Source: Podarcis filfolensis
Lineage: Eukaryota
Assembly (NCBI GenBank): GCA_964270895.1
Contig: OZ185447.1
Strand: one strand, 5' to 3'
Length of the DNA: 64,000 bases
Shown: piece after piece, positions 31,301 through 34,300 of the stretch
How the letters are laid out: every line of letters starts with the position of its first letter
Numbering within the stretch: the stretch's first letter is position 1
Notes under the pieces: generated by a model
What the model was told of the DNA's origin: nothing
Database searches by the model: none
Seen by the model: only the letters and a program-made list of their open reading frames with translations
Program-made: the position numbers and the translations under genes

Positions 31301-34300
31301 ACTAAGATACTTAAGACTTCCCGTCACTCCACAGTGCAGTTAACAATTCTGCTATCAGTTATACTTATAGTTATTACTTTGTTCTTTTTATGTTATCTTA
31401 TAGTTTATTTCACCTTTTTGTACCCATTCTCGTTATTTGTTGTTATTTTACACGGAAATCATTCAAACACTGCCATAGATGCCACACCACTATTTTATTT
31501 TTCTAAATGTTTCTTGAACGTGTCCCATTTTGGAATAAAGCTCTGCTTTGTATCACCTCTCAGCCTGTTTGTCATTTGTGCCATTTCGGCAGATTCTAGT
31601 AATTTATTCTGCCAATCTAGTTTTGTTGGAACCTTCTCCCACTTCCAGTTCATTGCAATCAACATTCTTGCAGCAGCAGTTGCGTACAGGAAAATTTATT
31701 TTACATTTTTTACGTTTTCACACCTTCTATTTTTTGCTGCCACCCCCCCAAAGTTTTACCTCCCCACAAAAAGATGCTACCTCTCAATAATGTCTGTGAG
31801 TTCCTCAATTCGCTGCTGTGGCTTCAAGATAGCCTGGGCCAAGGTGTCTGCCCGCTGCCAATGAGCCTCGAGGCGATGGGGGTCCTTTTGCACTTGTGCT
31901 GCATAACAGTGTGCATAGCTAGCCCCTCTGTAGCCCTTGGGCTCTACTTCCTGGGCTGGTGCTGCTGCTGGCTCCTCTTCCTCCTCCTCCTCCCTCCAGC
32001 GAGGGGGAGCAGGGGGGAAAAGAGTACAAAAGTGTAGCACCTCAGTGCCGTAAATTGGCACAAGGTTGCAGTGTTGCTCATTGAGGCGGAAGAGCCGGTC
32101 GAGGCGCTCTTCCTTCTGCTTCTTCCGCTTCTCTTCAAGTGATTCCTGCAGGCCAGAGAGAGTGAAGCCAGTCAGGGAGAACAGAGGCCAGGTCCCTTCC
32201 CCCAAGCGGTGATAACAGCCTCTAGGCCACCCTGCTCCTCGATCCCCCCCCCCCAGAGCCCAAGGCCTCCGGCAGGAACTCACCAGATAGAAGGGTGAGC
32301 GAGGTGGGGGAGGCGGCTGCCGCCTTGGCCGTGGGGCCAGGACGGAAGGGGGCGGTGGCGGCGTTGGGGTAGTGGAGCGCAGCGTTAACATCTCTGGCTC
32401 CTCCTTGGGCACTGTGCTTGAGGCTGTCTGGGAAGTCATAGCTGGGGAGGTGTTGGCGGCAACAGTGACGGTGGCCGCTGGAGTGACCGCAAACGGAGCC
32501 GCTATCGGGGGTGTGGCAGCTGCAACTGAAAAAAGAGGGGACAGAAAGGGAATCAGAAGGGCTGCTGGGGAAAAGAGAAGAAACTAAACTCTACTAGAAG
32601 ATGGTGCTTTGGCATTTCACGTTATCGTTTCCACCAATATCCAGAGCTGATGCTGACTCCCAAGATGGTGAGGAACTCTTCCCAACCCCACAGCTGTCTA
32701 AGATGCAGAAATCGCTACGCAAGGTGCTGGGAAACATGCTTACCCAGCTGTTGTTCCAGGCTGGGGCTTGGGGCCTGTACCATTCGCAGCATGGGTCTCA
32801 CAAGGCCCTGCAGGGAAGCTGGTGTGGGCGCCCTAACTGGCACCAGTGGCTGAGCAGGCAACCTGACAGGCGGCACAGGAGTCATGGGGAGCGGGGCTCG
32901 TTGGGCCATGAGGGCTGCTGGGAGACCAGGCAGTGTGGCAGCAGTTGTTGCTGTAGCAGGGCGCAGAGATGGCTGCTGCGGGCCAGGGGACGGGGTCAGC
33001 AGGCCATCTCGAGGAGCCTGACGCACAACGATCTTCACCACACCGGAGCTGTTCACTGCTGATGAGGGCACTGTGGGGGCAACAGCAAAGAGAGAGGCTG
33101 CACTCCGGCTCTCCAACAGAGCGGTGTCATTTCTAATTATTCCTACCAAACATTTATTTTATGCCAGTGCTGAAGGAGAAGCCTCAATATAGGACCAGGC
33201 CATGGCAATTCAGAGAAGGCTTGGGTGGTGGAGGGTTGGACCAATGTAGGGAGCAGGGCAGAAGGAAAGGGAAGTGGAAGGCAGCCAGGGTGGAGCAACA
33301 GATGCCATACGAGGGAGGATGAGAACAATATGCTGTTGGGGACACAGAAGGAAGGTTTACTGACCCAAAGGCAAAGTCACCCAGGCCCTCAACCCACAAA
33401 ACCACATTGCCTTCCAAGAGTGGGAGGGCAACCCCCAGGAATCCAGATACTGACTAACCTTGGGTGGCAGCAATGGGGAGGCTGATAGTTGCTGTGGAAG
33501 CCACAGCTGCAGCAGCTGTGCTGGTAGCTGGGACAGGCAGGATGGTGGGAGGCTGGTGGCCTGGCACAGCCTGCACCCCAACTGGGGCCTGCCCAGTCTG
33601 CTGAGACATGGCCTGGATCAAAGCAACCTGTGCTGGCTGGCTGATGATGTGGTGCTGCCCCCCGGCCGACACCAGGTGAACTACATTCCCTAGATGGGAC
33701 AGGAGGGAGAGACCATTAACTACACAGCTACCTGCCTTGCCTGCAGATGGTGGCCAAACTTCCAAGTGCATGTGTAAGCCCTCCTGCAGAGATCCCACCA
33801 TAGAAACAGTGGGCCTCTATGTCAGGAAAGGCTCTGGAGTTTCCTGTATCCCTCGGGTCACCGGATGCACCACAAAGAGGCATCAGGAGCTTAGAGGGAC
33901 CGCTCTGACGAAAGTATTTCTTCCACTGTACCCATTTCCTACCAATTCTGGTATTACTACTTCTCTGCATATTCACATTGCAAGGTTTTTATTTTGCATC
34001 CAGATCTACGAGGAACATTTTTCAGCGGTGTTTCAAAGGAGGACTCAGGCGATGGGAGTGGAACAGATTATCTGCTGCAGGAGCAAGCTGTGCCAGAGGG
34101 CAAGTGGAAAGCTCTCCCATGGAGACCCCGGCACATGGAAAACAAGCCAGTCAAGAGAGCAGAACCCTCCCCCAAAGACAATCATTATGGAAGGCTCAAT
34201 GAAGTCGTACTGGGCCCGCCCAGCCTACCAACTATTTCCAGTAGCACAGTAGTCTAGCAAGCGACACACTGTGCAGAGCTGCCCATCAGGTTCTGACAGG

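Follow-up and report, generated by a model that had tools for sequence, protein, structure and literature searches.

An SRCAP intron in lizards, snakes and a turtle carries a previously uncatalogued predicted H/ACA snoRNA whose pocket matches 18S rRNA around the equivalent of human U1662

The window analyzed here is a stretch of 64,000 nucleotides from contig OZ185447.1 of the Podarcis filfolensis assembly GCA_964270895.1. Its minus strand carries a gene that codes for HSA, split SNF2 and Helicase_C domains, and the exon peptides, compared one by one rather than as a joined spliced model, are 97–100% identical to Podarcis muralis SRCAP isoform X1. Identity is 100% for the two exons flanking the intron considered here. 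This intron occupies 33690..34355 on the minus strand, with a donor GT at 34355 and an acceptor AG at 33691-33690, between an upstream exon ending at 34356 and a downstream exon starting at 33689. Within it, in the sense orientation of SRCAP, lies a predicted box H/ACA snoRNA of ~131–134 nt (33770..33903, minus strand) whose 3′ end is ~80 nt from the acceptor. The ends are predictions that combine the fold, a covariance model and the borders of the conserved block. An open reading frame spanning the RNA (33454-33801), which gene callers also report, suggested a coding exon extension; this was excluded because length changes of 1–4 nt between species break the frame.

H/ACA RNAs hold an unpaired U-N of their target in a hairpin pocket, with the target 14–16 nt upstream of the H or ACA box, and the ACA box lies three nucleotides from the mature 3′ end. 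Inspection of the minus-strand sequence reveals the pocket and both boxes, the ACA box lying three nucleotides from a 3′ end that is predicted. The minimum-free-energy fold of the RNA is a hairpin, a hinge, a second hairpin and a tail (-57.5 kcal/mol), and its folding energy lies at z = -2.7 relative to dinucleotide shuffles. The 5′ hairpin (33848..33901, minus strand), defined by fold and alignment, rests on a lower stem formed by GGUCCCUC on its 5′ side (33901-33894) and GAGGGAU on its 3′ side (33854-33848). The two pocket strands, UAAGCU (33893-33888) and UGACCC(G) (33860-33854), form an internal loop beneath the upper stem and apical loop (33887-33861). The H box ACAGGA (33847-33842; consensus ANANNA) follows, and a hinge of 7 nt (33841-33835) leads into the near-continuous stem of the 3′ hairpin (33834-33776). 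Directly after this hairpin come the ACA box (33775-33773) and a 3-nt tail, CAU, that runs to the predicted 3′ end (33772-33770). All of these elements are on the minus strand. Measured from the H box, the base of the upper stem is 14 nt upstream, and the 3′ pocket strand begins 13 nt before the box. A preliminary description of this DNA had read a complete H/ACA layout at these positions, with UAAGCU and UGACCCG about 14 nt from the H box, and both the sequence and the fold agree with it. The hairpin-hinge-hairpin-tail order with an H box, the intronic setting on the host strand and the bipartite pocket around a U-N place the RNA in the H/ACA class, and we are highly confident that the locus is a real H/ACA snoRNA gene.

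The pocket was matched to its predicted target through short-motif look-ups in chicken rRNA. Chicken 18S reads GUGCGGGUCAUAAGCUCGCG (PMC2653536, supplementary file 7), which contains the motif that the preliminary description had given. The 3′ pocket strand is complementary to (C)GGGUCA on the 5′ side of the target U, and the 5′ pocket strand is complementary to the sequence 3′ of the target U-A, AGCU(C/U)G, of which AGCU pairs in chicken. Together the arms provide 6–7 plus 4 bp around the unpaired U-A, giving 10–11 pairs that are all Watson-Crick, and the U-A sits where the upper stem begins, at the 14-nt distance from the H box that the rule for H/ACA RNAs calls for. Duplex energies are -8.7 to -11.1 kcal/mol for the arm on the 3′ pocket strand and -3.2 kcal/mol for the other arm. 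GGUCAU occurs once in chicken 18S and 28S combined, making this the only such site there, and the chance expectation of a 6+4 match in one register is ~0.0015 per rRNA set.

The extent of each arm merits closer inspection. The seventh guide base, G33854, also pairs with C33894 to close the lower stem, which leaves 6 bp as the safe count on the 3′ pocket strand. In chicken-type 18S the residue equivalent to human U1668 is a C, and the 3′ arm then extends for 4 bp before meeting an A/C mismatch; with a U at that position, as in mammals, it would reach 6 bp. That is to say, the match to the site proposed earlier stands, while the proposed pairing of 7 plus 4–6 bp is reduced, with chicken-type 18S, to its shorter form on the 3′ arm and retains a seventh pair that is shared with the lower stem.

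Counting from Um1668, Am1678, Psi1692 and Cm1703 (sites from PMC6182160) places the target at the equivalent of human U1662, the same position that the preliminary description had reached. Its listing of human pseudouridines at 1643 and 1692 in this region but not at 1662 is also borne out at 1662, with no modification there in the human map (PMC6182160) and ~3% modification, equal to background, in the human 18S RNase T1 fragment UCAUAAG. Full-text literature searches returned no pseudouridine at 18S-1662. That human 18S is unmodified at this site fits with the lack of the guide in mouse Srcap, described below. By alignment to E. coli numbering, we place this uridine in the small-subunit head, midway along the hairpin loop of helix 43. 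The target falls within a stable 18S hairpin, a point against its use as a substrate.

To place the RNA among other genomes, a word search was performed with the spurious reading frame, which spans the RNA and the next exon, and it gave four Logan contigs. Exon peptides identify one contig as snake (L002, 100% identical to Erythrolamprus and Naja), one as turtle (L004, 97% identical to Pangshura) and two as other squamates (L001 and L003). A covariance model, R1, was built from these four sequences and the window sequence. R1 scores the window RNA at 149.9 bits over 33767-33903, and it also matches two species outside its training set, Varanus komodoensis (137 bits) and Crotalus tigris (119 bits), in the equivalent intron. 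The RNA is found in the equivalent SRCAP intron of six other reptiles in all (two squamates, Varanus, Crotalus, a second snake and the turtle), with R1 scores of 110–148 bits, and its distance to the 3′ splice site is 68–105 nt in every species that has it. Identity between the RNA of the window species and that of other squamates is 74–85%, and it is 54–61% with the turtle. The 200 nt upstream of the RNA share 23–44% identity, which amounts to the noise of an unalignable flank. Compared at the sequence level, the RNA is conserved far beyond chance, being kept in six other reptile lineages next to an upstream flank that cannot be aligned.

The distribution of this conservation follows the predicted parts of the RNA. 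In the alignment of seven lineages, the 14-nt block UCCCUCUAAGCUCC, which comprises lower stem and 5′ pocket strand, is invariant, as is UGACC-GAGGG, which comprises 3′ pocket strand and lower stem. The 5′ pocket strand UAAGCU is identical in all seven lineages and the 3′ pocket strand in six of them, one snake having UGACCA. The preliminary description had named conservation of the H and ACA boxes as a check on the RNA, and both boxes are conserved: the three consensus adenines of the H box and the ACA box are invariant in all seven lineages. Variation is located in the N positions of the H box (ACAGUA, AUAGUA, AGAAGA, AGAGCA and AGAACA), the hinge, both apical loops and the apical 5′ stem. 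Each orthologue, when folded singly, has an open 5′ pocket.

These patterns bear on whether the segment could instead be a conserved intronic element, for instance an enhancer or a regulator of splicing, whose resemblance to an H/ACA RNA is incidental. Proximity to the 3′ splice site would suit such an element, as would the observation that the 80 nt between RNA and exon also align among squamates; in three of the four Logan contigs, DNA similarity to the window extends from within a few bases of the RNA's predicted 5′ end into the exon. However, conservation is sharpest at the ANANNA adenines, the ACA box, the pocket strands and the lower stems, it sets in abruptly at the predicted 5′ end, and the turtle keeps the RNA without conserving the stretch between RNA and exon. 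We regard an element of this kind as very improbable.

Compensatory change, also named as a check in the preliminary description, gave a divided outcome. Two compensatory changes are present in the upper stem of the 5′ hairpin (U-A to C-G and C-G to A-U), but covariation statistics for the seven sequences do not rise above shuffled controls because most stem pairs never vary. In the lower stem of the 5′ hairpin, for example, five of the seven pairs are invariant across the seven species. Across the same sequences, 89% of alignment cells pair, compared with 38–54% when partners are slid. Since most pairs are invariant, the support comes mainly from position-specific conservation rather than from covariation.

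Comparison with four close relatives of the window species provides a finer view. A 129-nt extent of the RNA contains four variable sites (33779, 33869, 33883 and 33901) and is invariant from 33780 to 33868, with the flanking intron differing at ~10% of sites and by indels. One of the four changes turns the terminal pair of the lower stem, G33901.U33848, into A-U, which two of the relatives carry. The stretch is present in 20 public sequencing runs from five organisms, none of them recorded as RNA; the library type behind these contigs is either guessed or absent from the record, and the contigs extend into the flanking intron and exon, which makes them uninformative on expression.

Each available collection was next considered for a known family. 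The preliminary description had proposed a search of Rfam, and this returned no match to the RNA: Rfam 15 gives none at 33770-33903 when the whole window is searched at gathering thresholds, none at the RNA locus when it is searched at E<=5, and none for any of its 4227 models in a 701-nt slice around the RNA, even at E<=10 with lax filters. Run across the window, R1 finds no second copy of the RNA, the SNORA30-like element described below included. Metagenome scans with the conserved core of the RNA and with the chicken-type 18S target segment produced no match. The accessible part of the chicken snoRNA catalogue (PMC2653536) contains no snoRNA hosted by SRCAP and no guide near chicken 18S position 1617, the position concerned here. 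The RNA represents a previously uncatalogued reptile H/ACA snoRNA family, in which the class itself is known and the kind of system is not new.

SNORA30 (ACA30; RF00415) is the closest point of reference, as it too is a box H/ACA snoRNA encoded in sense in an SRCAP intron. It is assigned to 28S, at human 28S-4643. The preliminary description had failed to find SNORA30 in this gene, and here it requires correction. The SNORA30/37 model (RF00415) matches 46531-46666 on the minus strand over its full length, at 27.9 bits where the gathering score is 90, and the matched element has conserved pocket strands and a proper H/ACA fold. A SNORA30-like match is also present in Varanus, at 41.5 bits. Judged from these matches, SNORA30 is probably not missing from the window gene. 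The earlier suggestion of snoRNA turnover within the host gene changes accordingly: with SNORA30-like elements in both the window and Varanus, a second snoRNA appears to have been gained, not swapped for the first. The earlier statement that the two RNAs are unlike holds, since SNORA30 lies in a different intron, has different pockets and shares no sequence or model similarity with the new RNA by either Rfam or R1.

The same observations address the possibility that the RNA belongs to a described family from which it has diverged strongly, for example as a duplicate of SNORA30. SRCAP does host a SNORA30-like element as well, and duplication of a snoRNA within its host followed by a switch of target is documented in PMC6984369 and PMC2653536. 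Against this stand the absence of a match to any of the 4227 Rfam models even under permissive settings, the failure of R1 to recognize the SNORA30-like element or any other second copy in the window, and the lack of an SRCAP-hosted snoRNA or a guide for this 18S position in the part of the chicken catalogue noted above. Such an origin is improbable in our estimation.

In order to describe the phyletic range of the RNA outside reptiles, the loci of mouse, spadefoot toad and paddlefish were compared; the sample holds no bird, crocodilian, tuatara, marsupial or monotreme, and no archosaur SRCAP occurs among the 120 best protein matches. The equivalent intron position is present in SRCAP of Crotalus, Varanus, mouse, frog and paddlefish. 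In the Mus caroli locus (L005, 43 kb; orthologous intron of ~330 nt), the best R1 score with filters off is 1.4 bits. This score belongs to L005:24029-24122, which was considered as a decayed relic in the mouse intron and rejected as not significant (E 0.68). No significant R1 match was found in either the locus or the intron of Pelobates cultripes (spadefoot toad, L006; intron of ~350 nt) or of Polyodon spathula (paddlefish, L007; intron of ~950 nt). As a positive control, SNORA30 was found at 131 bits in Srcap of Mus caroli, indicating that the method detects snoRNAs in that locus. The preliminary description had anticipated a guide restricted by lineage, and the observed range, with the RNA in lizards, snakes and a turtle and none in the SRCAP genes of mouse, frog and paddlefish, is in keeping with it. 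All living reptiles fall within the span of turtles and squamates, so that the most economical history would have the RNA gained in the reptile stem; it may instead have been lost independently in mammals, amphibians and fish.

Inspection of the 3′ hairpin indicates a different character from that of the 5′ hairpin. The strands that would form its pocket, UUUCCUGACAUA and UGCAGG, vary between species and form no conserved open pocket, and CCUGCAU, the simplest form of a target for this hairpin, is absent from chicken rRNA. The 3′ hairpin is probably a structural second half rather than a guide. A separate feature occurs at the apex of hairpin 1, where UGAG, the Cajal-body box consensus, is present in six of the seven lineages, partly within the predicted stem. 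At this place the window species has UGGU and its four close relatives have UGGG. Small Cajal-body RNAs are recognized by a CAB box, ugAG, in the terminal loops; the window RNA carries UGGU in hairpin 1, and hairpin 2 has no UGAG.

The Cajal-body motif is most relevant to a reading in which the H/ACA RNA is real but its 18S match goes unused, the RNA being an orphan, a guide for snRNAs in Cajal bodies or a chaperone of pre-rRNA folding. The presence of UGAG in six of seven lineages keeps the minority view of an snRNA target alive, and the 3′ arm of just 4 bp with chicken-type 18S also speaks for an unused 18S match. Conserved snoRNAs with unmodified predicted targets are also described in PMC6984369. 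In opposition, UGAG is replaced by UGGU in the window and by UGGG in four relatives, the motif is partly paired in the prediction, and the second hairpin has no such motif. Furthermore, 10–11 Watson-Crick pairs, a site that is unique in rRNA, a 14-nt spacing and invariant pocket strands are unexpected by chance. We know of no GGGUCA-UN-AGCU in the major snRNAs. Use of the RNA for one of these other purposes is unlikely, although it deserves more weight than a diverged known family or an intronic element of another role. For the guide function itself, we see a better-than-even chance that the RNA makes the pseudouridine at the U1662-equivalent position of 18S.

The sequence of events that would connect these features begins with SRCAP pre-mRNA, from which an RNA of ~132 nt would be released after splicing to assemble with dyskerin, NHP2, NOP10 and GAR1. 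The pocket of its 5′ hairpin would then base-pair with 18S on either side of the U-A in the apical loop of helix 43, presenting the U1662-equivalent uridine to dyskerin for conversion to pseudouridine, and the 3′ hairpin and ACA box would serve as the second structural half, with no conserved guide. Three of these steps we infer: that the RNA accumulates, that the protein particle assembles and that the uridine is modified. The gene would have arisen, or acquired this guide, before the divergence of lizards and snakes from turtles. As a whole explanation, an intron-encoded and reptile-restricted H/ACA snoRNA that guides pseudouridylation of 18S at the U1662 equivalent is likely. A broader version has an even chance of being correct: that the helix 43 loop pseudouridine is specific to reptiles as a class, present at the least in lizards, snakes and turtles, its guide having been born in the SRCAP intron in the reptile stem and kept for ~270 million years, and that neither mammals, frogs nor ray-finned fish ever had it.

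Current maps of modified rRNA sites come almost entirely from yeast, human and a handful of model organisms, and the annotation of reptile snoRNAs depends solely on resemblance to Rfam families, which leaves a family without a mammalian member unseen. The present RNA leads to a specific prediction that is cheap to examine, namely that lizards, snakes and turtles have a pseudouridine at one 18S position where mouse and human have none. If true, it would provide a dated and clean case in which a ribosome modification was gained together with its guide, and an example of how such a gain proceeds: a new guide appears in a long-standing intron of an ancient gene and is kept from then on by purifying selection. 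It would also add to the view, expressed by Deryusheva, Talhouarne and Gall 2019 (PMC6984369), that vertebrate classes differ more than assumed in their sets of snoRNAs and in the pattern of rRNA modification.

Two known guides offer useful comparisons. SNORA41 (ACA41; chicken GGgACA28), which guides 18S Psi1643, is likewise a canonical H/ACA RNA directed to the 3′ region of 18S, and its bipartite antisense element of 7+5 nt in the 5′ hairpin is similar in size to that of the new RNA. In contrast, it is directed to a uridine 19 nt upstream, mammals and birds both conserve this guide, and its sequence is unrelated. A second guide, pug18S-1279 of Xenopus, lizard and zebrafish, is described in PMC6984369 as an H/ACA guide to an 18S uridine that is unmodified in human, limited to some vertebrate classes and recognized by genome comparison and pocket match, in all of which it resembles the new RNA. 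Supplementary figure 4A of that paper charts 18S pseudouridines of the whiptail lizard, chicken, mouse, human, frogs, salamanders and zebrafish. The guide pug18S-1279 differs from the new RNA in its host gene, Rpl35, in its 18S site and in its distribution, with frogs and fish having it and both mammals and birds having lost it. The modification that it directs has been mapped by experiment, and that of the new RNA is a prediction.

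Inspection of the SRCAP locus with Rfam models reveals a full-length match to the SNORA30/SNORA37 family at window 46531-46666 on the minus strand (27.9 bits, below the gathering score of 90). The Varanus SRCAP locus carries a corresponding match (L009:4688-4823, plus strand) that reaches 41.5 bits, also below the gathering score of 90. This element keeps the strands of the 5' pocket, has an H/ACA fold and is located upstream of the SRCAP exon containing the start codon. By comparison, mouse SNORA30 (131 bits, L005:11543-11672 in the Mus caroli Srcap locus) lies ~11 kb 3' of the start codon, such that the intron hosting SNORA30 may not be the same across lineages.

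The 5' hairpin of the predicted reptile H/ACA snoRNA (window 33903-33770, minus strand) presents UGAG at its apex in the turtle, both snakes, Varanus and two other squamates (columns 34-37 of the alignment), where UGAG is the consensus of the Cajal-body (CAB) box. The motif falls partly within the predicted stem. The apex reads UGGU in the window (33866-33872, minus strand) and UGGG in four related organisms. In the orthologous intron of Mus caroli, a faint likeness to this hairpin exists at L005:24029-24122 on the plus strand (GUGACUCUUUUUAGCU ... CCAAAGGGUAUGGU), where the match to the covariance model of the reptile RNA is not significant (1.4 bits, E 0.68). It may represent either noise or a degenerate relic.

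The best 120 SRCAP proteins from a protein search comprise one turtle and many squamates, plus mammals, amphibians and fishes, with no bird or crocodilian among them. Archosaur SRCAP seems to be absent or fragmentary in annotated sets.

A 115-codon ORF (window 33454-33801, minus strand) starts inside the snoRNA, crosses the intron end and enters the next SRCAP exon. Gene callers annotated its counterparts on short public contigs as proteins (P0001, P0002 and P0004). As a protein-coding sequence the ORF is an artefact; though spurious, it served to retrieve orthologous DNA.

Other RNA-like matches in the window include a weak SNORD89 match at 35141-35245 on the plus strand, opposite SRCAP (23.6 bits against a gathering score of 41; E 3.6), which is probably noise. 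Two tRNA-like matches on the minus strand, at 6784-6854 (31.8 bits) and 38601-38672 (23.3 bits; gathering score 29 for each), have mismatched stems and are probably copies of tRNA-derived repeats, not tRNA genes.
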